64,000 nt of DNA from Klebsormidium nitens (GCA_000708835.1 DF236952.1:124001-188000); one strand, 5' to 3'; counted from the stretch's first letter, positions 38,682 through 55,112 are shown. Made by a program: numbers and translations. The notes: generated by a model from the letters alone, not told the origin.

Positions 38682-41600
38682 ATGTTTCTTTCGCGGTGGT
38701 GCCTGCTTAATGGAGAATGCATTGTGCGCTTCAAGTTACAAGTTGTCAACAGCCTCTTTTTTAGAAACACTTTGAGAGGGGCTTCCGCAGTATTGCAGCC
38801 GTCTGCTGGAGCCACCCAGCACTGCAGCGATCCGCTAGAGCCACCTAGACTTGACTATCAACATTATCAGAACCGGAACCACCAGAATCACGGCCATCTT
38901 TTTGTTGGGGTAATGGGGAAGGGGCTGTCATCAACGAGCCTTTGGAAGGAAGGGTGCTGGGGCTCCACTCAGAGCCGCTTTGCCTTCACTACTGACAAGA
39001 ATGTGACTTTGAATGGCACTCAGAGACATTTGCAACTCCTCAGCAGTGCTGCGGCTTCTGAACAATCTAGTCTAACTCCAAGGGCAGGTGTCCCAAAGGC
39101 TTCTCTCTGCAAGTTGAAAAGGACCGTCACTCATGGCACCGCCAATGGTTCTCCTCACAAAGCAATCGGCCTCGACTCGTCTCGCTCAACAATGAGAGGC
39201 CTTGCCGTCCTGCGAGCGATTGGTGCGGCTGCAGCATTTGAGAACCATCTGACTGGGCGAGTGTCCAGACCGGCTTTGAACACCTTTCGGAACTCGAGCA
39301 CTGTTACAGCCGCAGACACAAAGAGTGCTGGGGCCACATCAGAGACTGAGCGAACACCAAGGATCTCAACCAATGAACGGTCCCGCTCTGATCCTCGTTC
39401 CCCAAGCCCCCCTGCTCTGAACTTGAACAAGCATCGGGCCGGTGTGTCAAAAGGTTCCGGCTGGACGGCAGACAGGGCCCGTTCCCCTGGTGAGTCGAGC
39501 GCAACTGAGAAGCGGCCGCTTCCGCCGCTCGCGATTGTAGAGAAGCTTCTCAAGGTCAAGGGGGGCTCTGCCTCTCTGCCTTTGCTGAAAGATGATTGGT
39601 CAGAAGGGGGCCGGAGGAGGGGGGGCGTCGAACGGCACACATCGGCAGATCGGAAGCCGGATGGGAGTGGGGGGCAGTCCGTGCAGGCTCAACTGGGGGA
39701 GAAGGGAATCGTCCTGCCAGAGTATGGGCCAGGATCTTATAGAATCCTCTGTCCAAAGGTAGGCTTTGACTGTCTTCTGAGCTATTGATTTCTTTCCTGG
39801 CAATCTTCGCTTACTACACTGGATCAACATCCAGATGGGCAACTGCATTGCCCCTGCTTTTTGCCTTGTGATGTCTCTCTCTCGATGGCCTCCGTGCAGG
39901 AGCAGATTCAAGATGCGAGCTGTCCTTTCTCAAAATATGCAAAGACAAACTTCAGTAATCTACGCCTGTTCACCCAGGAAGGACGGCATTCTTGGTACAG
40001 AGCAACGTGCGTTCTCGTTTCACAAATCCGGCGGCCAGTCCACTCACCAAGATAAGACCTCGCTCGCTTTGCAGTGCAATGGTGGAAGCTCCGCAGAAGC
40101 TGCCCTCAGTGTCACCATCTCCAATGGAACCGCCGTCTGGTGCTGCCATCGGGCCACTTGTGGCTGGACGGGGCGTGCCGGAGCCAGCCGATATGTTCCC
40201 TCCTCCTCTCAAGGTGGTGCTCCTTCAGGCTCCGCCCAGGGTAATTTCGTGCGCCCCCCAAAGCGGCCTCCCAAGCTGCCCCGCCCTGAAGACCTGTTGG
40301 ATCTCCCCCCGGAGATGGTTGACTTCTTCAATGGGAGGGGGATAAGCGAGGCGACTCTAGCGCGGAACGGGGTTAGGATGCAGGTCGCATTCTGCCCCCA
40401 GAAGAAAGAATCGGTGCCGGCGGTCGTGTTTCCGTACTACTGGGGGGGCGAGCTGGTGAACGCCAAGTACAGAACACTGGACAAGCAGTTCTGGCAGGTG
40501 AGACGTGTTTTTTTGATTGTCGGACAGATCCTCTGCCCTCCTAGCTGACGACTTTCAAGAGCACGTTTGAAACGGAGTTGGTGAGGTTTATCAAAGTCAG
40601 GGAAAGGAGATTGCAAAGTAAGCCCCCCGCGCTGTTGTATTCCGTATGCGACCTTGTGGAGGCTGTATGTCACACCTTTAGGTGAATGTCCTCACCACAC
40701 CAAGCCATAAATCCTACACCAGATTGTCTTGCAATCATTCAAGAGGGAGTTCTGGTTTCAAATTTTACATCAAAATGGTTACAGGGGGAACCAGAGAAGG
40801 AGCACTCTCGACGAAAAGCTTTGGATCGGTTCTGTGAGAACGAAAGACGGAATCGAGAACTCTCAAGTTCCATTTCTTCTGGAACATTAGAGCTTCCTGT
40901 TGAAATGAGTCCCCACTTTTGTACCGTAAGTTCGTGACACTTGTGCGCAAGCTGCTTTTTGCAGATCAAGGGGGCCGAGAAAGTTTTTTACGGCATCGAT
41001 GACGTCATCGACAGCGAGACGGTCATCATTGTGGAAGGCGAGATGGACAAGTTGGCCCTGGAAGAGGCCGGCTACAGGAACTGCGTCAGCGTGCCAGGTC
41101 AGTGTTACATCACCACTGCTCTCATTAATGCCTGCGCATCTCATCCTTTTCAAAAGGCCGTTAAATTGGAACTTGCTCTTTCCAAGCTGGAAGTTACGTT
41201 GTTCAGCCCAACCTCACTCCCGGTTCGCCTTAAATCAGTTCGACCTTGTCGTCCACCTTCCTTAGACACATGCCGCTTACGGGGTGAATTCGTTCTTCTT
41301 GATCCGGTTGTCTGGGACCAATGGAGAGGTGTGTTACGCTGGGGACGTGTGCCCCTGTATGCTAAACTTGAAAATTGTAAAACCAGATATGCAGTTGAAG
41401 TTTCAATGAACAATCAGGTCCCTTCGCAGATTTCCTCCATCTTAAAGGGCTTCCGCCTCTTCTCGCCGGGAGTAGAAATGGGCCCGTGCTTGCCACGTCG
41501 CTTTGGAGACTTAGCGTTCACTTACGAAGCCTCACAACTGTCCGCACGAAATGCTTACGAACTCTTTGGCTCATGCTGCTTTCAGAGCACAACGTCGTTG

Positions 41601-44600
41601 CCCTAACCTTATTCAAAGATCTTATTCAAAAGTGTTGTGTCTGCAGATGGGGCTCCCGCCAAGGTATCATCAGACCCGTCCGCGCCAACCCCTTTCAGTG
41701 ATCGTAAGTACTCATACGTCTGGACCTGCCAAGAAGACCTCAGCAAAGCGTCCAAATTCGTACTCGCAACGGATGCGGACGGTCCGGGGCAGGCGCTGGC
41801 CGAGGAGTTGGCGCGTCGGCTGGGCCGGGAGAAATGCTGGCGGGTTAATTGGCCGTTTATGCCCGACGGGAGGCGGGTTAAGGACGCTAACGAGGCGCTT
41901 ATGGCACTCGGAAGGGCGGGGGTGAAAGCGGCAGTTGAGGGGGCTGAGCCGGTTCCAGCTGTCCAGACTTCGGACCCTGACCCAGCTGTAGATGGGGCTT
42001 CCCACGAGCAGACAAGGATTAGTGGGTCCGGGGTAGACGCGGGGTCAGGGTCTCGGGGCGAAGTACCGGGATCTGGGGTCAATGACGCGGGGCGGAACGA
42101 GATGGGTAAATTGTTCGAAAGTACAAAGAGGGGAAGCGGATCTGAAAGACCGAAGGAGACGAGGCCAGTTTTGCAAGCCTCTAGCAAAGGTCCTGGTGGG
42201 TCGCAACACTTTGCGGGAACAGCTCCAAGGTTCGGAAGCGCAAAAGGGGGCTCGTTCTCACCCGGCAGTGTATCCACGAGAGCAGCGGCTCTGCGTGCGA
42301 TACCAGGGCCGGTGGAGACAGGCACCGGGCTCGGATGGTCGTCGTCCCATCTAAAGGTCCGTTCCCTGTCGACAAGGTCCAACGGTTTCGTTTGCAGCGC
42401 AGTGCGCGGCGGTCAAGGGGAAGCCGCGCACAGCAACGGGGAGGCGGCGGGGGACGAAGACGTGGCTTTGGACGGGAAGCCAGTGGCGCCACTTGTGAAG
42501 CGAGGCGCGCTGGCCATTCCTCGGAGGAGGTCGGCGGTTGTGGTAGGAAAAGGGGGTGGGGAGCAGCCTTTGGGGAGTAGTGAGTCGCTGCATTTTGCAG
42601 CAAGGAATGATGAGGAGAGTGAGAGCGCGGAACGATTTACTGCTCGGGTCGGAGTAAGTTCGGAAAGTGAGCGGGTTGTAAATTGGTGGGAAAAGGAGTT
42701 CCCCGGCGTTGTTTCCCCTGGATACTTGGAGCCGCGGCAGAATCCGGCGACTGGGCGACGAGCTTTCATACCGGATGCGGAAGCACGGGCAATTGGGGGG
42801 CAGAACGGAGGGTCTGCTGACGCACCAAAAGTGCGGAAAGTCAGGCTACGGAGGACAAAGAGTGCGCCAACGCTGGAGGGTAGCGGAGGAAATAATCTGA
42901 CAGCATCGCAGGCGCCTCTACCAAGTTTGTTTCGGACAAATGCGGGTGTTTCCACCAAGCAGGGAGAGGGTTTGCACAAGGGTGCAGATCCGGGCAGAGG
43001 ACACGTTACAAGCGCGGGGAAACAAGGGTCCAATGGCGTGGTCGGTGATTCAGCCCCGGTCGGAATCAAAAGAGTCGCGAAGACCCTTCCTGACGGTACA
43101 GACCGTACTCGAGCAATATCAACCACAGCCGGCTCAAACACTGCGTCTGAAAGCGGTGCGATTGCGGGTTCGCCAGCGAGTTCGGACCTGACAACCGAGC
43201 GGACGCAACACGGGGAGAGCGAATCGGACGGCCCCCCGAGCAGTCCGGCAGCGTCCGGACTGAACGAGGAGCAGCTGGCGGCGGTGTTTGCCCCGGTGGG
43301 TCCAGTGCGCGTGGTGGCGGGACCCGGGTCAGGGAAAACCAAGGTGCTGACCAACCGGGTTGCGCACCTGGTGCTCGACCGGGGGGTGAAGCCCTGGAAC
43401 ACGCTGGTAAGTGCGGCCCGGGAAGTGTGTTTCGGTCTTTGGGTTTGTGAAACATTCAGATTAAGGCAGTTCGAGAATTGTTGGCAAACGCACTCGCGGT
43501 GATGTCTGACCAACGTGCTGATCACTGACGCCTCCTGGAAACGTTTGGATAAGAGCGGGTCAAATCTGGTCCGGGAAAACCAAGGTGCTATCCAACTGGG
43601 TTGCGCACTTGGTGCTTGACCGGGGGGTGAAGCCCTGCTGATAAGTGCGGCCTAGGAAAATGTCTCGGGCTGTCGAATTTCATGAACTCTTGACTAAAAG
43701 AAGGTGAGCCTTTGAACATGCTAATAAGTGCGGCCCTAGGGAAGCTTCCCGAGATGTTGAATTTGACGATTGTTTGGAGAACAGCGAATCGAGAGGACCA
43801 TCAACAAAATGGACTTGCCGTGTTATTTGACGGCTCTCTTGCGCCTGTTGCTTGTCCTTCTTGTTTTGCAAAGCCTGCAAGGAATCCTTTTCGCGTAAGC
43901 AGCATACTTTTGTTCTCGTTGGGCCCTTTGAGCCGTTCTTGCAAAACTAGCAAATGGTTTATTTTGGACTAGCACGGGTCCTTTTATCTCTTGAGCCAAA
44001 CGGTACTCCCAACCCCCCAGTCTCCAAAAAGCCGCGTCCTTCACCTCCTCATCAAAGCGGGTCAAATCTCCACCGTGGAAAAAGGAAAAGGTGGGTACCG
44101 CAGGAACCGTCCCACCTGACGAAGTCTGAGCCTGACATAAAATTGGAACATAAAATTGGAATTTGTGTATCTGTATCCCACTCCTTTCGCTACTGCAGAG
44201 CATCACTTTCACCAATAAGGCGGCCTACGAGATGCGGGAGCGGCTCGGCATAATGCTCGACGAGCACATGGCCAGCCGACTTGCGGTACGAACCGCTGGT
44301 CTCTGTCTTGAGCTTGTCGGTTATTCTTTGTATCGTGATCTTGCGCGGGCATGAAATTGCTGCGGTTTTGGTTTGGTTAAGTCTGATGCTCGTGTCTTGC
44401 GAAAGATCACTGCAGAGCGTGTGATGCTTGCCACTTGCTCTGCTTTCAGTCTCAGTACGCTCTGACTGTGCATTCAAACCCTTCTTTTGGACTTGGCTTT
44501 TGGATCGATCTACGACTCTGCCCATCATTGCTTGTTGGTGGCTTCTTTATGCTTCCACTGCAAGTCGTTCATCCTTCTGGAGATTACACTACACTTTCAC

Positions 44601-47600
44601 TTGTTTTGGACACCTTCGAGCAAGGAACAAAGTAACCTTGGGTCCTCAAACGTATAGGAGGACATCCTCGCAACTCTTCTAGTCAATCTCGGCATTGTAT
44701 CGGTTGATGTTTCCAGCAATGAGTCGGCATCTTCTTGTCCCGGGATCTTATGGAATTCCGATACCGCACCCTTTCTTGTTCTCGCGTTCTGGTCAGGTTC
44801 TCGGTTACGTTCTTGCGTCTTTCGTTTCTCGCGAGAGAGACGACTTCGTAACGGTCCGAAGCACTGTAAAACTACCGAAAAACCAATGCATGGACAAATC
44901 CTTGCACTTTTGCTACGATCTCTTTGGACTGAGCGTCGAGGACCTATGATGTCTAAGTATCAGTATCGCTGTCGTAGACACCACCTGTGGTAACAGCGGG
45001 CGGTGTCAATGGCGACTCCTTGATTGCTGAGGTCCACATCCTGACACTATCGGTATGGCTGCCGCCAGTATTCACCTTCTTTCTCAATCGCTGTTTTAGA
45101 TCAGGATCTTCAACCTGGGACTGTGATTTGCAACACTTTTTTTTTGTCTTACTTCTTACATGTTACATCACCTGTTGTGGCGTCTCGAGATTACAGATGT
45201 TGCTCGCTCTCGCGTGTTCAAATAAAACCTTTCTCTCAGTCTATGAGGTCAGACCTCGACGCCCGCGAAAGCAGAAGCCGTCTTGCTCAAAAGTGTGCTT
45301 GACGATTGGTTGTTGCACATAGTACTAGGTATCGGTCCTGAGTGCTTCTGACAGAGGATTAGAGTCGCAGAGTGCGATTGAGTGGGTCGGCATGTCTTAT
45401 GTCTTCCAAGCTTCTGACGATTCGAGCGCTGTAAATCTGGCAGGTAAGTCGACGGGATTTGTTGCGACTCTCGTTGCCAAAAGCGATGCATCCAGCCGAA
45501 AGACGAGCAGTCCGCTTATCTTGCCTACGTCTAGTCTATGTTCGTATTGTCAAGTCTATATTCGCGCTGAAGAAAAGTCGTAAACAAGACATCTTTCTCA
45601 GTGCTCAGGTTAATCCTCTTCCTAAAGTAAGTTGGTTATCAGGCCCAATAGCTTCGTGCCACGTGTCCGCAGGTGGGCACCTTCCACGGCATCTGTGCGC
45701 GCATCCTGCGCAAGTCCGTCGCGAGCATGCCCGACTGCGGCCGGACCACGACTTACGTCATCTATGACGAAACCGACTCCGCGTCCCTCCTCCGCAACAT
45801 TCTCAAGAAGGTACGCTGCGAGTCAATGCAACTGATCAGCATTCTCAAGCTTCTTTCGGAATTTTACTCGACGTGGCGAAGTTCTTGGTCAGCTTGCTTC
45901 TCCCAACCGCCGCAGGTCAGGCTGCCGTATTGCTCTTTAACGCTGTTTCAGCGCAGGGTGTCCTCTGCCCCGATCCGCAGAGCAAAAGAATCCGCCAGTG
46001 TGGATTAGAATCTTTTTGAAGGCTTGAAAGCTCCCGACCCTTGCACATCTTCTACCCTTGAAAGGAGAGTGGTTCATCTGGACGGCTTTGAATCCGAACT
46101 TGCACAAGGCTTTGACGATTCCACGTCTTTAGCTTACGATTCTCTCGATTCGGCTTTTCAACTTAGTCGTTGCAGCTGAGCCTGTCAATCGGCACTGAGG
46201 TGCCCCTGACGGTCTCATCTGCTTGAGCTGATTGGCTATATATTTTGAGTAACCCTTAACAACTTAAGCGTTTACCTGGACGGCAGCTGACTCGCGTGTT
46301 CCCACCTCCTCAGGTCCCGCGTTTCGACCCGGCAAAGATGAGTGTGAAGGACCTCATGGACCGTCTCGGGAAAGAAAAGGCGTGGCGGCTCAGGCGAGAG
46401 ATCGACGGCCGCCAGCAGGGGGATCCCTCCGGCCGCCACGTAGTCCCACTGAAGTCAGCACTTGTCAGCGCAGGAGGGGAGGAGTCTCCCTTGGGGATGG
46501 ATCCCATACTCCAGTCCATAGCTGCACAGTATGAGGTTTGTGCTACCAACGTTACTCTTCTTGCTCTTCTTCCTTGCAGCTTTGCGCTGGTGTGCCTCTT
46601 TCGGGCTTATACTGAGCTCTCAGTGCTTAAGCGTCTGTTTGCATGAAAGGGTTACTCGGGTTCACAAGCTGCATCTTCATGTTTTGTCCATGCCTCTAGA
46701 TTTTTCCTTCAGCTTACCTTCTCATCCATTATGTGGAGGCAAGCTGGTTGTCGTTGTCGATATGGCACATCACGTGCTCGAGGTCAAACTGACGTTCCTA
46801 ACCCAGCTTTCCCCTTGGTCTGTGCGTGTGGTGCGGTAGATAGCCTGATCTGAACTCTTCAACTCGTTCCGCAGCTCGAACTTCGCAATACTGCGCGATC
46901 GCTCGAAGACCGATGCAAGAAGTAATTTGTAGCCTAAACCAATTCCTGATTTGATTCCGCTGATCTGCTTGAGGACCGATGTAAGAGAGTAGCTTAACGC
47001 AACTCCCAACCTAACTTCGCAGGCCGAGCTTCGCAAGTGCAACGCATTCGACTTTATGGACCTGCTGATATGGGCCGTTCGGCTGCTGCGTTCGTGTCCG
47101 TCCGAACTGCAGGTGAGCCCGAATCTTGGCCGTGCCTTTGACCCCTGTGCTCACGTCTTCTCAACACTTGTCGTTGGAGGCCCGGCCCGTTCGGATGCGC
47201 GGATTTGGAACACCCGCAGTCCACACGTCAAACGTTTTGAGGTGGTCAATTAGTCAGCGTCCCCAACCCTTCCAATCGGGGAGGCATCCTAGGGCTTGCG
47301 GCACCTGTATTTGGCGATAAAGTTCTGCACGTTACCAGCCAGGGCGGCTCCTGGGTTATAACTTGAAACTCGAGCCCTAGGTTACCAAGTCAACAGTTGA
47401 AGAGCCAATCAAGTTGAATCACAGTGCGGGCACCATATTTGGGACGCGTTCCAGGGTAACATCCGTCGATTCCCGAGCTGCTGCCGTCTGCTGGGCTGGA
47501 AGACGAACGATTCTGAAACAAACATCCTGAAGCTTCCATGAATCAAGCCTCAAGTATTCTCAATACTGACATACTGGAGGCTGTCGCACCTTTAAGTGGA

Positions 47601-50600
47601 CGAATTGCAAGACACAGACTCCGCACAGAACGAGCTGGTGCAGCTGATAGAATCTTTCAGTAGGGCAGTCGTTCTTTGAAAGTCTGAACATTCAATTTCA
47701 AAACAGATCTCGCCTACTGCTGGTGCCACCTTCTGGTGGACGACTTTCAGGACACGGTTGTCTGCAATGATTGCTGCAATCATGCCATTACTGCTGCAAT
47801 AAAAAGTGCGACTTTAACACAGTCCTCGAAATGCACGCATTTGAAAAGTAGGATCCAAAAGCATCAAGGAATCTGCCAATACACTGTAGGCGTACCGCAA
47901 CTTATGGCAGCATCTTTTGGGTGGACGAGTTCCAAAAGACGAATTTCGCCCAGTACGAGCTGGTGCCCTGAGCAAACTTCCAGAATCACAGCCCATGTTA
48001 TTTGGATTAAAGAACTGAAATATATACTCGACTATTGTTGTAGGCGTACCGCGAGTTATGGCAGCATCTTCTGGTGGACGAATTCCAGGACACGGACTTC
48101 GCCCAGTACGAGCTGGTGCGACTCTTGGGCGAGAAGAACCAGAGCGTGTTCGTTGTGGGCGACATGGACCAGTCTATCTACGGGTGGAGGGGCGCCGACT
48201 TCCGCAACATGCAGCTGCTGTTCGAACGGGACTTCCCAGGGGGGCATGATTACCAGGTGAAATGGGAATGGGTTGTGAAATGATTGGTTGTAAGTGTAGC
48301 TGTCAGTACTTAGAAAGAGTGTTTGCGGGTGCTCATTTCAGGGTCGAAGGTATCAAAAGCTGCGGACCTTGGAGGCAAAATATTGCTTTGCAGCCAGGTT
48401 GATTTTTAAGTTTTACTTCGCATACTCCGTGGAAAGATGTACCGTCTCCTGTGTTGCCTTTTCGGTCAGTGCCGGGGTTTCTTATGGATACTGCATATTC
48501 GTGTGCTCTTCTGCTCACCATAAAGCTCCGTATCCTCTATGTCATTGCCGTCAAGACTGGTTGCTTTTCGATCCTAATTCCCTCGTTCGGCAATCCCTGT
48601 GGCTCGCCGACACTGGTTACGTCCGGTTGCTTCTCCTCTGAGACCCTGAGCCCTTCGTTTGTATCGCGCTCAAAAGTGACCGCACATCCTTGCAGCTGCG
48701 GAAGAACTATCGTTCGACCAAAAACATTCTTCGGGCTGCTGAGGCCCTCATCCGGCAAAGCGAAGTGGATCGCACGATTGGGCGGCACAAGCCGTTGCAA
48801 CTGACCCCCACGAAGGTAGGTCGAGCAGCATTTCTGGAGATGGGTATCTCTGATGAAAGTTTCACATGGAGCTTCGAGCTTCCAAAGACTGGAGGATTTG
48901 GCAGTTAACGAGCAAAAGTGGGGCGAGTGACGCGTCTGCTTGCTCTTGAACGGAGGAACACGCTTTCTATGTAGCGCTGCGTTATGGTTGTCCCGCCTTT
49001 CTGTGAGTGTGACAAAGCACACGTGAAGAGCTTGGCCAGTCAAAGAGAGTCTTTGTTGCTTATATGATGGAAAAGTCAGGTCACTCGAACGGTCTTGGAA
49101 ATTAGGGCGAAGCACCTGCAGAGTTCTGCAGAGGGAAAAGCTTCACTGGGCATGCAAAGAAAGGGTGGAGCCACTTACGAGCTTTTCTGCAGTTTTTTGG
49201 GCAATGAGCTGCTAGCCGAGAGATGTCATCAAAGAACTTTTGGCCGGCGGGTGTGTCAAGATTTTGCCCGGGGCCCCTTCCTGGAATCCATAACAGAACT
49301 CCGGTTTTTGGTGTACAAACATCGAATCCTGCTTTTCTGCAGCCTCACGGGCCGGTCATCAAGTTCCTCGAGAGCGCAACGGACGATGAGGAGGCGGCAA
49401 TGGTGGTGAGCCACGTGCAACTCCTCGTGTCGGCGCGGGGCCACTCCTGGGGGGACATGGCCATACTCTACCGCACCAACTCTCAGGCACGTGCACCCCC
49501 TAAATCAAACATTCTGTTCCGCGCCTAGTTTCTTCACTCTTAAGGGGACGTGGCGGTGCTCTTCCGCACCAACTCCCAGGCAAGTGGCCCCCCCCCCCAA
49601 TTGAAAATTCTGTTTCGCGCCGGGTTTGTGGCGGGTCCATGGCTGTGCCCTTCGCTGGCATTTCAGCCCCCCTGAATCGGGATTTCTATACCTACTTTGG
49701 AGCACTCCTGGGGGAACATGGTGGGGCTATTCGCAGGCACGTTATTCCCCCTGGTTCGGGGGTTCCGCACCAAGTTCGGATCATTCCTTGGGGAGCATGG
49801 CGGTGCTCTCTGCGGGCAATCTTACCCCTCTGAAGCGGAGCTTCTGTTTTGCAACTAGTTTAGATCCCTTTTGGGGGGACGTGGCGGTTCTCGACTACAC
49901 CAAGGTCCCCCCCCAAAATGTAACGTCCACACTCATGCTGAGCCTACAAGTTACAGTTGCAAACTTTGTAAATCGCCTTTCAATTTTCGAGCCTCAAAGT
50001 TAGGCCTGGTATACTCGAGGGACACGGCCGTGCTCTGCCGCACCAATAGTCTCAGGCATGGGCCCACACCTGGATTGGTATCCTGTTTGCACGTCTCAAA
50101 ATTCCATAATGACTCCTCCCTTTCGCTTGTTTCCTCCGTAGCTGATAGCTGATGATGCAGAGTAAAGCAAAAAGCGTTCATGGGGACAAAGGACCACCAA
50201 AGAGTGTGGCAAGCTGTCTAAAAATCCTCGTCAGCTGGTTCCCGAGGCTCTTAGGTTCATTCTGCGAGTCAAAGGGAGTGCGCAAGCTCTGCTTGCTTAA
50301 AAGACACTGCCAACTGCGAACGAGTGCTAGCTGCAAAGGCGCGCAAGGCCACGTTCAAGTCTACCGCCCTTGCGAATCGCTTTTTAAGGCTTCCAGATGT
50401 CATCGCTCGGAACTCGGACCCTCAAGACGTCAGACCGTTACAACGGAATCTTGTTGCATGCAGTCCCGCAAGTTCCAGCAGCAGCTGACTGCGCGGGGGA
50501 TCCCCTTCGTGGTGGTAGGAGGGCTCAGCTTCTACGCACGAAAAGTGAGTACTTTTGAGCTTAGTTTTTTCTCGCCCAGTCTAGTTCGCGCCCTTGTTGA

Positions 50601-53600
50601 ATCTGCGTCGAGCACTGCGTTTGGAAGGTTTACTTGCAGACTGCGCAAAGAGATATGGATGTCTTGCACAGGGGTCAGATCCATCATGTGCTTTGCTTTT
50701 TGCTTGACAGAAGGTGGAGAAGACCTCTGCAGGGCTTTGGATAAAAAAGGAAGCTGAAGCTGGATAATCTCTTCCTTGTTTCGCTGAGTGCAGGAGATCA
50801 AGGATATTATCTCCTATCTGAAGTTGATCGCCAACCCGCTGGACGAGGTCGCGCTTAACCGAGTGCTCAACGTTCCCAGCCGAGGTGAGAATGGCCTTTG
50901 TTGTCAGGACGTTCTCTGCTCGTCATTAAGGGGCTTGCAGTATCCTGTTACGGAAACAATCAGGAAGTGCTGCTGGACAGTCGCTTCCTTGCAAAGGCTC
51001 ACAATCACTGCCCACCATTTGGATTAGCTGGGCAGCGTCGGAAATAAACTTGTCCCGCTTTCAATCTGGTTCTGCGCGTTACCAGCTCAAACCCGTTGAA
51101 ACTTTTGAAACAATCCTCATGTAGGTTCACGAACAGACCGGGGTGCCTTCTGGCCGACTTTGAACGTCTGAGATGTCGTCTCACTCTGCTCAGCAAAGTT
51201 CAGCGAAGCTTGACTTCCCCCTCTTTCAACCGCAGGGATTGGGGAGAAGTCGGTGGAGAAGCTTCAACTGTGGGCTGCCTCCCTTGACATGACGCTCCCG
51301 CAAGCCCTTCATGTAAGCGCATGCGCTCTTTCTTACTTCCGAAACAGTTACGACTATAGGGTTTCAGGGCTTTGAAAAGGAATCGTAGCAAGCTTCTATC
51401 ATCCCGCTGTAGCATCCTTTCGCACAGCTTTCGTTGCGATCTGTCTGAGGACGAGCGACGGCGTGTCTTGGCTCTGCTGGGGCTGCATGCTGTCGCGTCC
51501 GTTGAAAAAGCATCCGAAGTCTCAGGAGGGCGTGTTTCTCAAAGTGTCGCCTTTTCGAGCACGGCACTTGACTGCAAGTGGCAGGTCCTTCACAAATTGC
51601 GACCACTCTTTCGCAGTGGTCTCGTCCCTCGCAAAAGCTCACCTACCCCCGAGCTTCTTTGCGGGAAAAGCGGTGTGTTGCGTTGTTCAACAGCATTGAT
51701 TCATCCCGCTCTTCCATCACTTCTGGTCCTTCCATCTCGAGCTATCATTTCAGCTTTGCTTGGAAGCACTGGTTCTGCACGTTTTTAGCTTCTCGCAAAT
51801 CGGCTTACTTTGCCGATTCTTTCACCTTTGTGGAACCCAGGGCATACTCGATCGACGCTTCCTCTTTATTCTGGCTGATAATACCGCCTTTGACTGTGCA
51901 GGAGTACCGGAAGCAGTTGCCAGACAGTCTCGCTCTCACCAGCCGAATCAAGTGAGTTCTGGCTCCAGTTAGCCTGCTCGGTCTTCGTGCTCTTGCACAA
52001 TCTTCCTTATCGGTCTTGGAGAACTTTTCGTTGTCGCTGGAAAATAACCTCGGTAGCAGAGAAAAAGATTACCTATTCTATGAATGTAATGTGGGTCGGT
52101 TCGTGTGGTCAAATACCAGCCTCAGATCTGACGTGGACCAACATTAGCTACTTGACGGGTCCGTGTGCCAGAAACGAGTAAGCGCCGGTGGAAGCCGTCG
52201 CCATGCCTTTGGACCGCGAATGTCGAAGTCCTTCAGTCCGTTCGCTAACAAGCCAATCCCTGAGCAAGCAAGCATTGGAGGTGCTTGCGAATTCATTGAC
52301 CTTGCAAGGCGGACGCGCCTTCTCAGAATTCATGTGCGTTTTGACTATTCTTGTTGGTTTCGTGCAGGTCTGCCGTGCAGCGGTTCACTCTGCTGATGGA
52401 TCATTTGTCCGTGATGAGCCAAACCGAGTCGCTGGACGTGCTGATACGGGAGATTCTGCAGAGGTGAGGCGATTGGAGGAACCATGCTTGATGCGCGTTT
52501 GGAGACAGATTGATAAATCAGGGAGGCGGTCCGACAGCCCCGCTGGTAAATCAAGAATTGGTGATCCTCAGTACTTGCGATTCTCAGTTGCATTCAGACC
52601 TTGATCGTTCTTTCACAACAACCTACGAAAGTCCCTTGAACTATCGGGTGGGGTGATCAGCACAACAGCTGGTGCTTTCTCACACCTCGATGTTTCTGAG
52701 AAGATGCCTTTTCATGATTATAAGAAGCCTCTGTTCGTTGCTTTCCAGGACGGACTACGAGCAGCGTATCTTCGCGACCAGGACGGAGGACGATGACGGT
52801 CTTTGCAAGCTTTTCCAGCCCTTCCACTGGATTTTATCAAGATTGAACTGAAGTTGTCGCGTCCAATCTTCCATAACGACCCTGTTTTCAATCCGTTTGA
52901 GGATGAGTTACGAGCAACACATTCTGGCGACCAAGACGGAGGACATGGACGAACGTTGCAAGTCTAAGCAGCCGATCAGACGTGGACCCAGCTCATTGAC
53001 TTCTGGGAAAACTTGATATTTCATCCAAAGCTCTCTCTAGCAGTCCTTAGGACAGATTACGAGCAGCACGTTCCCACGACCAGGACGGAGGATATGGACG
53101 GAAAGTGCGAAACCTACACAGCATCTCGCAAGCGGACCCACGTAAAAGGTTTCCTAAACAAGGCGCGCTCTATGACTGACGAAGTTCCTGAATTGTGCCT
53201 GTCCAGGACGGACTACGACCATTACATCCTCGCAGTCAAGACGGAGAACGTGGACGGGACTTGCAAATCGACACAGTCTTTCAAGGAAACCCGACAAAGT
53301 CGTGTTCTCGTCTGCCCAACGCGCCTGTTCTCCTACTTTCCAGGACGGAATACGAGGCGCACATCTTCACGACCAAGTCGGAGGACATGGCGGAGAAGCG
53401 CGAGCGGTGGGAGCACGTCCAGGACCTGCGGCAGGCCGCGCGCGAGCACGAGCGCAAGAACGGGGCCGGGGCGGCCGCGCTAGCGTCGTTCCTAGAGGAC
53501 GTGGCGCTCGCGGCCGCGGTGGACGAGGAAGGGGTGGAGGGGGGCGCGAAAAAAGCGGTGGGTGCTCGGACTGACCCGTAAATTGTGTTTCCCACTGGGC

Positions 53601-55112
53601 CCGACCCTAAAGCTCGTGGGTCTTTCGAATAGGTATGGTGAGCTCAACTTATAGGACTGGGACGGGTAGGGTTAGTAAAGTGGTTAGGGTGGGTACGGGT
53701 GCGGAGCGGGTGATTATTGGGGTTCAGGTTTAAAGTGTTAGCTTCGTCTTTTTAAACTTGAGCTTACTAAATATTTTAGAGAGGTATCTAAGGCGCTGGA
53801 GGTTGTGCGTGCCAAGTCCTGTATCCTTCTCCTATCCCGAGAGTTACTCTATTTTCTTCTTATTGCGACGGCGCTCGACAAGGAATCAGGGAGGCCTTGA
53901 CACGCAGAATGACCCCCTCCCTCTCACTGACTCGACAAGGTGGATACACGCGACCTCCAGTCTGTGTCTTTTTCTTTAACCTCCTCCAACACCGAAGTGT
54001 CAAAGCGTGAGCGCCCAGATCCAGTGTACAAAGCTCTCCTCTTAGGCCCAGCCGATGATGAAGCTGATCTTGAAACACCCGCCCACGGGCCTTGGATGAA
54101 CGTCTATAGCATCAAGATCGTGAAGCTTTGAGCCCGTCGGTATAGCACTGCCTCAGAATCCTAGTAGTCCTTCTGTTCTCCTCAGGGCAACAATTTCGCA
54201 GGCGGCTCAGCGAGGTCATGAAGCGGATGAGTGCGGTTATTCTCGAGAGTTCGTAGACTGCCCAGGCTGTCGTAAAATCGACGACTCTTTACACGCCGTC
54301 GATTCATTTGGCGTCCAGACGCCTACATGGAAGCTGCAATTTTAGAACCTAAACTTCGGATTTCTAATCACAGGGCAAGAGCGCGCAGGCGGCGCAACCG
54401 GTCGTCAAGCTGATGACAATCCATGCCGCAAAGGGCCTCGAGTTCCCGTGCGTCTTTTTGGTGGGCGTCGAAGAGGGCCTCCTTCCGGTGAACCAGAGCA
54501 TCCCCTACCCGGAACTCGTGGCGGAGGAACGCCGCCTCTGCTACGTGGCAATTACGCGGGCCAGGGACCGATTGTGAGCCACGTGTCGCCCCGGGGTTTG
54601 CTGGTTGGGTTGAGGCGAGGAGAATCTGGAAGAGGAGGGTGCTTGCGTTGCAACTGGACTCTTGTTGTCTGTTTTTCGTTCGTGGGTGATGGAAGATGTC
54701 TCATGTAAGCTACGCAATTTCTTCTATTGGTTAAGCAAGTTCGAGGACATTGGTCAAGAATGATTCCAGAGATTTCGAGATTGCTGTGTTTACAAGTGAT
54801 GACAGAGTTGCCAGTGTTTCTTATTAAGACGCATTCAGATGTTCTTGAAATCAACGCTTTGAGCTCCACGTTTGCTGCTTATTATCGAAGCTACCATGAG
54901 ACTGTTTGGGAGAAATTGTAGTGTCACATAATGAGGCGAAGAATCGCATTGCATCAAGCTCCTTTCCAACGCTTTCATTGAAGTGTCGAGGCGTGTACTC
55001 AGGTCGACTACATCTTCTTTTTTGCAGGTTCCTGTCAAGGGCCGATACACGATTCATCAACGGAAAGGTGCTTTTCCAACGTGCATCTCGGTTCTGGACG
55101 GAGCTGGCTTAG
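38682..55112 (+). CDS. Twinkle-type primase (Zn finger + TOPRIM) fused to UvrD/PcrA-type SF1A helicase, ~1766 aa, probably organelle-targeted
   Basis: 19 exons: 38682-39758, 40075-40497, 40965-41097, 41647-43406, 44199-44285, 45673-45810, 46314-46535, 47023-47112, 48044-48256, 48696-48815, 49343-49486 (GC donor), 50464-50544, 50794-50884, 51236-51312, 51902-51951, 52368-52463, 53344-53557, 54374-54573, 55028-55112; total 5301 nt with all phases consistent. Primase motifs: CPK|CNGG...[38 protein letters not shown]. Helicase motifs: [87 protein letters not shown]. Confidence 0.85.
43571..43745 (+). repeat. Intronic echo copies of the end and donor of exon 4 (Walker A region)
   Basis: GGGAAAACCAAGGTGCT...GGGGGGTGAAGCCCTG...TAAGTGCGGCC is repeated at 43571-43655; a shorter TAAGTGCGGCCCTAGGGAA lies at ~43724. 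Confidence 0.9.
47596..47966 (+). repeat. Three intronic echo copies of the start of the exon carrying helicase motif II
   Basis: GTGGACGA.TT.CA.(G/A)AC at ~47596, ~47736 and ~47921. The nearest copy keeps TGTAG|GCGTACCGC; real exon starts at 48044. Confidence 0.9.
49544..50062 (+). repeat. Five intronic echo copies of the end of exon 11
   Basis: GGGGA(C)(A/G)TGGC.GT.CT...CGCACCAA variants at ~49544, 49702, 49786, 49872 and 50018. Confidence 0.85.
52741..53260 (+). repeat. Four intronic echo copies (~150-bp period) of the start of exon 17
   Basis: AG|GA(C/T)..A.TACGA.CA....CGACCA.GACGGAG.A at 52741, 52901, 53045 and 53201; real exon starts at 53344. Confidence 0.9.

Follow-up and report, generated by a model that had tools for sequence, protein, structure and literature searches.

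DNA replication in the organelles of the green lineage is thought to depend on a single primase-helicase, Twinkle (Arabidopsis At1g30680). Like T7 gp4, Twinkle has an N-terminal primase, built from a zinc finger, an RNA-polymerase subdomain and a TOPRIM domain, which is joined through a hexamer-forming inter-domain linker to an SF4 helicase, a DnaB-like ring that moves 5'-3'. We analyzed a 64,000-nt stretch of Klebsormidium nitens DNA (the window, to which all coordinates refer) and found on its + strand a gene, 38682-55112, with the same N-terminal primase and with neither the hexamer-forming linker nor the SF4 helicase. Instead, its primase is followed by a ~425-aa linker and a non-ring SF1A helicase, 3'-5' by family. 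Compared to PcrA, UvrD, Rep and the 'ATP-dependent DNA helicase PcrA' of Pycnococcus provasolii, this helicase has the same motifs Q, I, Ia, Ib and II-VI in the same order, while the fusion adds ~1075 N-terminal residues, including the primase, and is without the Tudor-like domain of the bacterial proteins.

Several other systems combine the same activities or domains. P4 gp-alpha, the RepA proteins of N15 and PY54, poxvirus D5 (an archaeo-eukaryotic primase, AEP, with an SF3 helicase) and herpesvirus UL5/UL52 likewise couple priming to unwinding, with the primase N-terminal, and several of these motors also run 3'-5' (PMC4889955); that of P4 gp-alpha is one of them. P4 gp-alpha, the RepA proteins and D5 are viral or plasmid replication proteins, whereas the fusion is a cellular eukaryotic gene; UL5/UL52 consists of an SF1B helicase and a primase as separate subunits, unlike the single-chain fusion. 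Among viral replication proteins, one survey records fusions of DnaG-type primases with SF4, SF3 (P4 gp-alpha) and SF2 (N15, PY54) helicases and of AEP primases with SF3 and SF6 helicases; its sole SF1 entry is herpes UL5, a separate Pif1-type subunit, and none of its fusions has an SF1A UvrD/PcrA motor (PMC4889955). In 94% of known fusions the helicase lies C-terminal to the primase (PMC4889955), as it does here. A TOPRIM domain also occurs alongside a UvrD-family helicase in Gabija (the GajA TOPRIM nuclease with the UvrD-like helicase GajB) and in class 2 OLD nucleases with UvrD partners. In these systems the TOPRIM domain acts as a nuclease, carried on an ATPase scaffold, and its helicase partner is a separate protein, whereas the TOPRIM domain of the fusion is part of a DnaG/gp4-type primase and the gene shows no defence context. 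Lastly, the primase-only paralogues of the At1g30660 type ('primase homolog protein') are likewise Twinkle duplicates that lost the SF4 helicase, but they gained no other helicase (Pfam) and they nest in angiosperm Twinkles, which the fusion does not.

The two halves of the fusion meet inside one exon. A single open reading frame (ORF) on the + strand (41637-43502; stop-free 41607-43499) encodes the end of the TOPRIM domain and the start of the helicase in one frame, with LATDADGPG and KDANEAL near its start and AGPGSGKT (Walker A) near its end. In Pfam, this ORF matches UvrD-helicase positions 1-50 with 45 bits (cut-off 23) and its start matches Toprim weakly, while the ORF of the preceding exon (exon 3) matches Toprim_4 at 1e-6. 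PcrA structures in the PDB, including 1qhh, match the end of the fused ORF at 1e-9. The intervening linker has ~425 codons and 0 stops, for which the chance expectation is 8e-8; when shuffled, it was stop-free in 0 of 20000 trials, and its other two frames contain 9 and 18 stops. Its composition (41952-43235) is rich in G, S, A and R. An AlphaFold2 model of the junction exon, low-confidence overall (pLDDT, the predicted local distance difference test score, of 30), has no helices or strands in linker residues 102-543 (pLDDT ~28), which fits a disordered linker, short of proof. An initial annotation of this DNA had described exon 41647-43406 as running uninterrupted from the TOPRIM end through a ~440-aa low-complexity linker to the Q motif and Walker A. 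The ORF and the Pfam and PDB matches agree with this description, and the linker is indeed low-complexity and stop-free, but its length here is ~425 aa.

Upstream of the linker, we compared the primase region with canonical Twinkles from a moss, angiosperms, Spirogloea and bacteria in an alignment. The four zinc-finger Cys (CPKC...CHRATC) occupy the Cys columns of canonical plant Twinkles, and the RNA-polymerase-subdomain motifs, the TOPRIM Glu (IVEGEMD), the DxD motif (ATDADGPG) and KDANE are all intact. Homology to Twinkle spans the zinc finger, the RNA-polymerase domain and the TOPRIM domain, and it ends at AVEGAEP, before the Twinkle 'YPIRGLF' inter-domain linker. The SF4 helicase (DnaB_C or AAA_25) that would come after the PIRGLF linker had no match in the Pfam scan of the fused ORF, where a UvrD-type helicase stands instead. 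PDB searches with single primase exons gave no match.

Downstream of the linker, the assembled helicase is a stop-free 670 aa that contains, in order, motifs Q, I (AGPGSGKT), Ia (TFTNKAA), Ib, II (VDEFQDT), III, IV (NYRST), V (HAAKGLEF) and VI. Its exons tile Pfam UvrD-helicase (PF00580; positions 1-50, 51-74, 80-121 and 209-270; 45 and 87 bits, cut-off 23) and UvrD_C (PF13361; positions 3-26, 41-83, 111-139 and 283-342; 80 and 27 bits, cut-off 25.6), and it is 44% identical to bacterial PcrA over ~600 columns. In the alignment, the columns of the C-terminal Tudor-like, RNA-polymerase-binding domain of bacterial PcrA/UvrD are empty, and the protein ends after a PSRF-type motif. Judged by these motifs and domain matches, the fusion helicase is a complete PcrA/UvrD-type SF1A helicase without the C-terminal Tudor domain, and by family membership it would translocate and unwind 3'-5'. 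The zinc-finger Cys, TOPRIM acidic residues and helicase motifs Q to VI that the initial annotation reported as intact are all present in the alignments.

The gene is transcribed across the junction. We found the junction exon in twenty RNA runs with two organism labels, and aligned the RNA contigs of four runs from four studies (X1, X2, X8 and X14) to 39800-45790. Single contigs of X1, X2 and X8 join 40073-40493, 40961-41094 and 41644-43406 with zero mismatches; with the cut offsets applied, the latter two blocks are exons 40965-41097 and 41647-43406. The same two splice joints are found in X14, where the contig ends at 42118 inside exon 4 and two more contigs cover the remainder of that exon. 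Farther downstream, the joints 43405>44198 and 44284>45672 (GT..AG) are seen in X2, X8 and X14. Introns 1 to 3 have zero RNA depth, which shows that the runs contain RNA and not DNA carry-over. The exon borders 40965-41097, 41647-43406 and 44199-44285 had been drawn correctly from the genome, being identical to the RNA splice joints. The initial annotation had also considered that the primase part could end or be spliced off before 43260; contigs in X2, X8 and X14 splice exon 4 onto the helicase exons.

A separate feature of X14 is that its contigs break at 42089 and 43144, where other contigs with 255 nt of unrelated sequence attach at the same 30-mers and the depth climbs from 67 to 95 and above. 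We considered alternative exons at both sites and rejected them, the loose sequences being absent from the window and no AG preceding either site. The breaks could reflect a branching assembly graph, a variant or, in that strain, a second copy.

The fusion is also present in related taxa. The fused exon recurs, with the same neighbouring exons, in three other assemblies: L001 (SRR14092358), L002 (SRR23617307) and L003, a low-coverage metagenome contig that carries frameshifts, probably read errors. In L002 the fused frame runs for 613 codons without a stop, and in L001 for 548. Across these relatives the identity of the linker is 22-53% (22% in L001), and its frame stays open. Compared to L002, the synonymous divergence (dS) is ~0.6-0.7 throughout the fused exon, and the ratio of nonsynonymous to synonymous divergence (dN/dS) is 0.10 at the TOPRIM end, 0.55 in the linker and 0 at the helicase start, where the proteins are 100% identical.

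Analyzed by separate phylogenies, as the initial annotation had proposed, the halves lead to two sources: the primase to a duplicate of the lineage's own Twinkle and the helicase to a green-algal PcrA-like group. For the primase, a key comparison is L170 (4195-10168), a canonical Twinkle gene from the same sample as L002. Besides a long first exon, it has exons for Toprim, for the TOPRIM end, which runs on into 'FPIRGLF', and for AAA_25. Its intron positions are those of the fusion gene, and two islands of its long first exon, RAVGAAAAFEKHL and GIILPDY..HRILCP, recur in exon 1 of the fusion gene. We built a tree from the primase columns alone, using the four fusion genes, L170 and other Twinkles. 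In this tree the fusion genes are monophyletic (100/97), their sister group is the canonical Twinkles of the same lineage (100/99), and this pair is in turn sister to Spirogloea, mosses and vascular plants. On this sister position, a lineage-specific duplication of the alga's own Twinkle gave rise to the primase half. The primase-only proteins of Gossypium, Corylus, Rhododendron, Juncus and Castilleja nest within angiosperm Twinkles, far from the fusion clade, and by the same tree these paralogues are of independent origin. An earlier tree, computed with helicase columns and without L170, was misleading on the ancestry of the primase half and on the angiosperm paralogues. The claim that a UvrD/PcrA SF1A helicase has taken the place of SF4 behind a Twinkle primase is upheld by the homology break at AVEGAEP, the complete PcrA-type helicase after it and the primase tree, and 'module swap' is a fair wording because the tree shows a duplicate of the lineage's own Twinkle.

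The nearest full-length relatives of the helicase half are stand-alone green-algal helicases of Pycnococcus ('PcrA'), Ostreococcus, Tetraselmis, Trebouxia and Myrmecia, together with the picoeukaryote-like P0219 and P0243; P0219 was returned by a region search with the helicase start. Stand-alone PcrA-like helicases of chlorophytes are P0243 (loci L167-L169), P0246, P0256, P0266, P0276 and P0280. P0243 lies on an intronless contig beside a Cyt-b5-desaturase fusion gene and has an Arg/Ala-rich presequence. A Toprim domain occurs in 0 of the best 120 helicase matches. The helicase tree compares a 25-row group, including six green-algal sequences, with 22 bacterial rows (11 named or located bacteria, and 2 metagenome PcrA sequences grouping among them). 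The window's helicase groups with green-algal and other database sequences, apart from the sampled bacteria, with a Shimodaira-Hasegawa-like approximate likelihood ratio test (SH-aLRT) value of 99; the bacterial rows contain no cyanobacteria or alpha-proteobacteria, which bears on the ultimate source. By this grouping, the helicase half is a member of a PcrA-like family of green algae whose chlorophyte proteins stand alone. A bacterial genome scan with exon 9 returned PcrAs of Chloroflexota and Patescibacteria, a set biased by the pattern search that we used as references, with no origin inference. One metagenome contig (L084) carries a helicase first exon with matching intron positions and no in-frame TOPRIM upstream.

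The simplest history would begin with a duplication of Twinkle in the alga's own lineage, after which one copy would have lost its SF4 helicase and its TOPRIM-end exon would have come to read into exon 1 of an existing organellar PcrA-like gene.

To place the fusion among catalogued proteins, the 621-aa junction exon served as the protein-library query. In an exhaustive search of 1.84 billion representatives, the best 150 matches were fusion fragments and canonical Twinkles, and none of them looks like a full-length fusion. Among these 150, only P0001 and P0003, both exon-level fragments, extend to the helicase end of the query; ten other two-stretch or long matches, scanned in Pfam, proved to be fragments or canonical Twinkles. 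A word search with words from the first 500 residues of the junction exon returned only Twinkles, as the query words excluded the helicase end. The ESM Atlas contributed generic UvrD fragments only, and a metagenome scan with an alignment of the fused exon contributed bacterial PcrA starts only, with no additional fusion. In the full-text literature searched, we found no link between a Twinkle/TOPRIM primase and UvrD/PcrA in plants or algae; the papers covered include a plant Twinkle review from 2025 and an inventory from 2014 of organellar replication enzymes, in which Klebsormidium is listed. Neither the protein libraries (best 150 matches) nor the searched literature contained the architecture as a catalogued family. 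The initial annotation knew of no described example, which holds for the SF1A partner, not found in the literature, but not for a primase on a 3'-5' motor, for which P4 gp-alpha (SF3) and N15/PY54 (SF2) are precedents. Only the SF1A partner appears to be new, while primase-helicase fusions, including those on 3'-5' motors, are well known.

We extended the gene model beyond the region covered by RNA. The model has 18 exons in frame and a single terminal stop, with ~5.2 kb of coding sequence for a protein of 1745 aa and 188 kDa; all of its introns are GT-AG except one that is GC-AG. Exons 7 to 19 were placed by tblastx against related loci and by tblastn with bacterial PcrA genes and P0219, together with a purpose-built PcrA hidden Markov model (HMM) and splice-site enumeration. 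A small further exon is predicted within 51313-52380, with boundaries that are not fixed, and a direct in-frame join across this interval also exists; at some other splice sites, alternative acceptors or donors would likewise keep the frame. Both ends of the gene, the start at 38682 and the stop at 55112, agree with those of the initial annotation, as does splicing in phase, but its 19 exons and ~1766 aa become 18 exons and 1745 aa here, the gap being the small exon in 51313-52380. The exons, numbered in the 19-exon scheme, are as follows.

Exon 1, 38682..39758, + strand: start codon, 359-aa low-complexity N-terminal extension and first zinc-finger Cys pair (LCPK).
Exon 2, 40075..40497, + strand: second half of the zinc-binding domain (CHRATCGW) and RNA-polymerase subdomain; in RNA contigs of X1, X2, X8 and X14; aligns with canonical Twinkles.
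Exon 3, 40965..41097, + strand: first half of TOPRIM (IVEGEMDKL, catalytic Glu); GT..AG joints on both sides in four runs.
Exon 4, first part, 41647..41951, + strand: second half of TOPRIM, as far as AVEGAEP.
Exon 4, middle part, 41952..43235, + strand: ~425-aa linker with no predicted secondary structure.
Exon 4, last part, 43236..43406, + strand: helicase Q motif (GLNEEQ) and motif I / Walker A (AGPGSGKT).
Exon 5, 44199..44285, + strand: 87 nt, motif Ia (TFTNKAA); RNA joints; Pfam positions 51-74.
Exon 6, 45673..45810, + strand: motif Ib; start from RNA joint 45672/45673; Pfam positions 80-121.
Exon 7, 46314..46535 (alternative start 46287), + strand: 1B-domain region; 63-85% conservation with L002 by tblastx; GT-AG in frame.
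Exon 8, 47023..47112, + strand: homologous to bacterial PcrA and P0219.
Exon 9, 48044..48256, + strand: motif II (LLVDEFQDT) and motif III; Pfam UvrD-helicase 209-270, 87 bits.
Exon 10, 48696..48815, + strand: motif IV (NYRST); Pfam UvrD_C 3-26; 98% identity to L002 (tblastx).
Exon 11, 49343..49486, + strand: AILYRTNSQ; GC donor at 49487; homology and Pfam UvrD_C.
Exon 12, 50464..50544, + strand: homology and splice sites.
Exon 13, 50794..50884, + strand: NVPSRG; Pfam UvrD_C 111-139; 100% identity to L002 (tblastx).
Exon 14, 51236..51312, + strand: start of domain 2B; PcrA HMM 422-442; donor GTAAGC.
Exon 16, 52381..52463 (alternative start 52368), + strand: domain 2B; weak PcrA HMM match 457-488; in-frame junctions on both sides.
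Exon 17, 53344..53557 (alternative end 53577), + strand: TEYEAHI...ERWEHVQDL; PcrA HMM 26 bits.
Exon 18, 54374..54573 (alternative starts 54380, 54382 and 54389), + strand: motifs V (HAAKGLEF), Va and VI; Pfam UvrD_C 283-342, 80 bits.
Exon 19, 55028..55112, + strand: C-terminus (FLSRADTRF) and stop; acceptor CTTCTTTTTTGCAG with an in-frame join; PcrA HMM 609-634.

Exon 1 has 64% identity to L002 over its full length, with a common first Met. The loose RNA end that precedes 40073 matches 39727-39756, followed by AG/GT, which sets exon 1 at 38682-39758 and the start of exon 2 at 40075. Its extension is possibly an organelle presequence followed by a disordered region, as read from the sequence. 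Exon 9 is 69% identical to an Anaerolineales PcrA, and exon 18 is 63% identical to P0219. The sole GT alternative for the donor of exon 11, at 49516, was rejected, as it would insert unrelated residues. The junction of exons 11 and 12 that preserves homology uses the GC-AG intron, CAG/GCACGT, and an echo copy ~60 nt downstream reads CAG/GCAAGT.

Such echoes recur along the locus. Introns hold decayed tandem copies of neighbouring exon edges at 43525-43635, 47578-47950, 49544-49920 and 52650-53300. The copied edges are the 3' ends of exon 4, Walker A included, and of exon 11, together with its donor, and the 5' ends of exon 9, present three times, and of exon 17. Intron 5 also contains a candidate box C/D small nucleolar RNA (snoRNA) of ~95 nt (44941-45034, + strand), with a C box UGAUGU, a D box CUGA and a terminal stem GGACC/GGUCC. 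It has a weak full-length match to Rfam SNORD14/U14 (18.9 bits, E 0.19, under the gathering score); at the gathering threshold, Rfam had no match across the fusion locus. The candidate is 97% identical in L003 and 92% identical in L002, occurs three times in tandem in the corresponding intron of L001, and is more conserved than the flanking exons.

The data confirm that the fusion gene is real and expressed, with the architecture of an N-terminal extension, a primase, a linker and an SF1A helicase. We consider it probable, with room for doubt, that one nuclear gene gives a main spliced mRNA for a ~1745-1766 aa protein, a Twinkle duplicate joined to a PcrA-like helicase, that serves organellar repriming or restart. 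The organellar location and the repriming or restart role are what we infer from this architecture. PcrA/UvrD-type motors travel 3'-5' on single-stranded DNA as monomers or dimers. In the proposed mechanism, the fusion protein would be imported into plastids and/or mitochondria, where the SF1A motor would load on single-stranded DNA at gaps, 3' tails, displacement loops (D-loops) or stalled forks and move 3'->5'. The motor would keep the weakly DNA-binding primase at high local concentration on the exposed template, and the primase would lay RNA primers for the organellar DNA polymerase. If the tracked strand were primed, the result would be leading-strand repriming; alternatively, the primers could be laid on the strand displaced in a D-loop or rolling circle. 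The outcome would be repriming, restart, or priming in recombination-dependent or rolling-circle replication, and the enzyme would act beside the canonical Twinkle replisome, not replacing it. The T7 primase alone binds single-stranded DNA weakly, and its fused helicase raises the affinity ~100-fold (PMC12593628). The C-terminal domain of PcrA docks the helicase to RNA polymerase (PMC8318588), so the loss of the Tudor domain suggests that the fusion enzyme is no longer recruited in this way. A bolder version, which we offer tentatively and regard as somewhat doubtful, is that the protein is the first primase on an SF1A motor, a single-chain organellar 'restart primosome' that would track 3'-5' along the leading-strand template or D-loop and reprime.

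Several observations weigh against an organellar repriming enzyme made from one main mRNA. In some contigs of X2, X8 and X14, exon 5 (motif Ia) is skipped in frame (43405>45672). Retention is seen for introns 4 and 5, at ~20-30% of exon depth in these three runs and also in the sole X1 contig, and transcripts that retain intron 4 would stop at 43500-43502, predicting a product with the primase, the linker and Walker A only. Helicase exons have 1.3-1.5x the depth of primase exons in X2, X8 and X14, which could be a 3' bias or an additional helicase-only transcript. RNA contigs are assemblies, of which one does not prove one molecule, and the fusion protein is known here from the genome sequence and RNA contigs alone. 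Exons 7 to 19 are supported by homology and splice-site consensus, RNA mapping being limited to 39800-45790; one exon (51313-52380) lacks fixed borders, one intron requires a GC donor, and the fusion is known from four related taxa only.

The main rivals to organellar repriming are that the locus gives separate products or that its primase half is non-catalytic. In the former case, which we judge improbable, the 188 kDa fusion would be minor or untranslated: the primase and linker might be made by retention of intron 4 (stop 43500-43502) and the helicase alone from an internal start in the linker. The retained introns at 20-30% of exon depth (X2, X8, X14, and the only X1 contig), the 1.3-1.5x deeper helicase exons (X2, X8, X14) and the X14 contig breaks with foreign sequence at 42089 and 43144 all speak for such a division. 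Nevertheless, in three runs the spliced joints leaving exon 4 are at least as deep as the retained intron, and with no AG at 42089 and the loose sequences outside the window, the breaks look like assembly-graph branches. Intron retention is frequent in green plants and often unproductive. Moreover, the linker frame is open in three taxa despite heavy divergence (dN/dS 0.55), which would be needless for separate halves, and this conserved open linker makes separate products less likely. We regard it as extremely improbable that an assembly error, or a pseudogene in decay linking two adjacent genes, explains the fusion: a low-complexity linker and introns full of decayed exon-edge copies could mislead an assembler, but the RNA contigs of four studies are colinear with the window with zero mismatches, three independent assemblies of related taxa have the same arrangement, and ~5.2 kb of coding sequence runs without a stop or frameshift, with every catalytic motif intact. 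The misassembly in the linker that the initial annotation had envisaged is contradicted by the same colinear contigs and agreeing assemblies.

It is also unlikely, in our assessment, that the fusion is made with a primase half that does not prime and is instead a DNA-binding or recruitment module, for instance for the organellar polymerase or single-stranded DNA. The enzyme would then be an organellar PcrA/UvrD whose tasks are to strip RecA-type filaments, to clear away proteins or R-loops and to keep illegitimate recombination in check, with the primase half as a targeting device in place of the lost Tudor domain. Consistent with this, the helicase is without the PcrA C-terminal domain that docks to RNA polymerase, its chlorophyte relatives function without a primase, and RecA filaments are dismantled by UvrD, as cited in a passage of PMC6981420. 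However, the primase half has kept all four zinc-finger Cys, its RNA-polymerase-subdomain motifs, KDANE and the Glu and DxD of TOPRIM, and the TOPRIM segment is under strong purifying selection (dN/dS 0.10), as expected of an active enzyme. By comparison, metazoan Twinkle has lost its primase activity and no longer has the corresponding residues (PMC10761990). These conserved catalytic residues make a non-catalytic primase half less likely than a priming one.

The finding has several implications for organelle DNA maintenance in green algae. Green algae in general keep a PcrA-like helicase that is missing from the inventories in the consulted reviews of organelle DNA maintenance. In this lineage, a conserved and expressed gene that couples a Twinkle primase, apparently active by its conserved residues, to a PcrA-type motor suggests a second priming machine, one whose polarity differs, and the fusion gene is a concrete candidate for repriming and restart in plastids and mitochondria. 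The fusion is also a natural experiment in helicase-primase coupling, in which a ~425-aa flexible tether can be compared with a rigid hexamer. PriA-DnaB-DnaG, the bacterial restart system, is to our knowledge lacking in green organelles. If the bolder version is true, an organellar restart primosome would fill the role of that system, and a cellular eukaryote would have re-engineered the phage-derived Twinkle primase onto a different motor.

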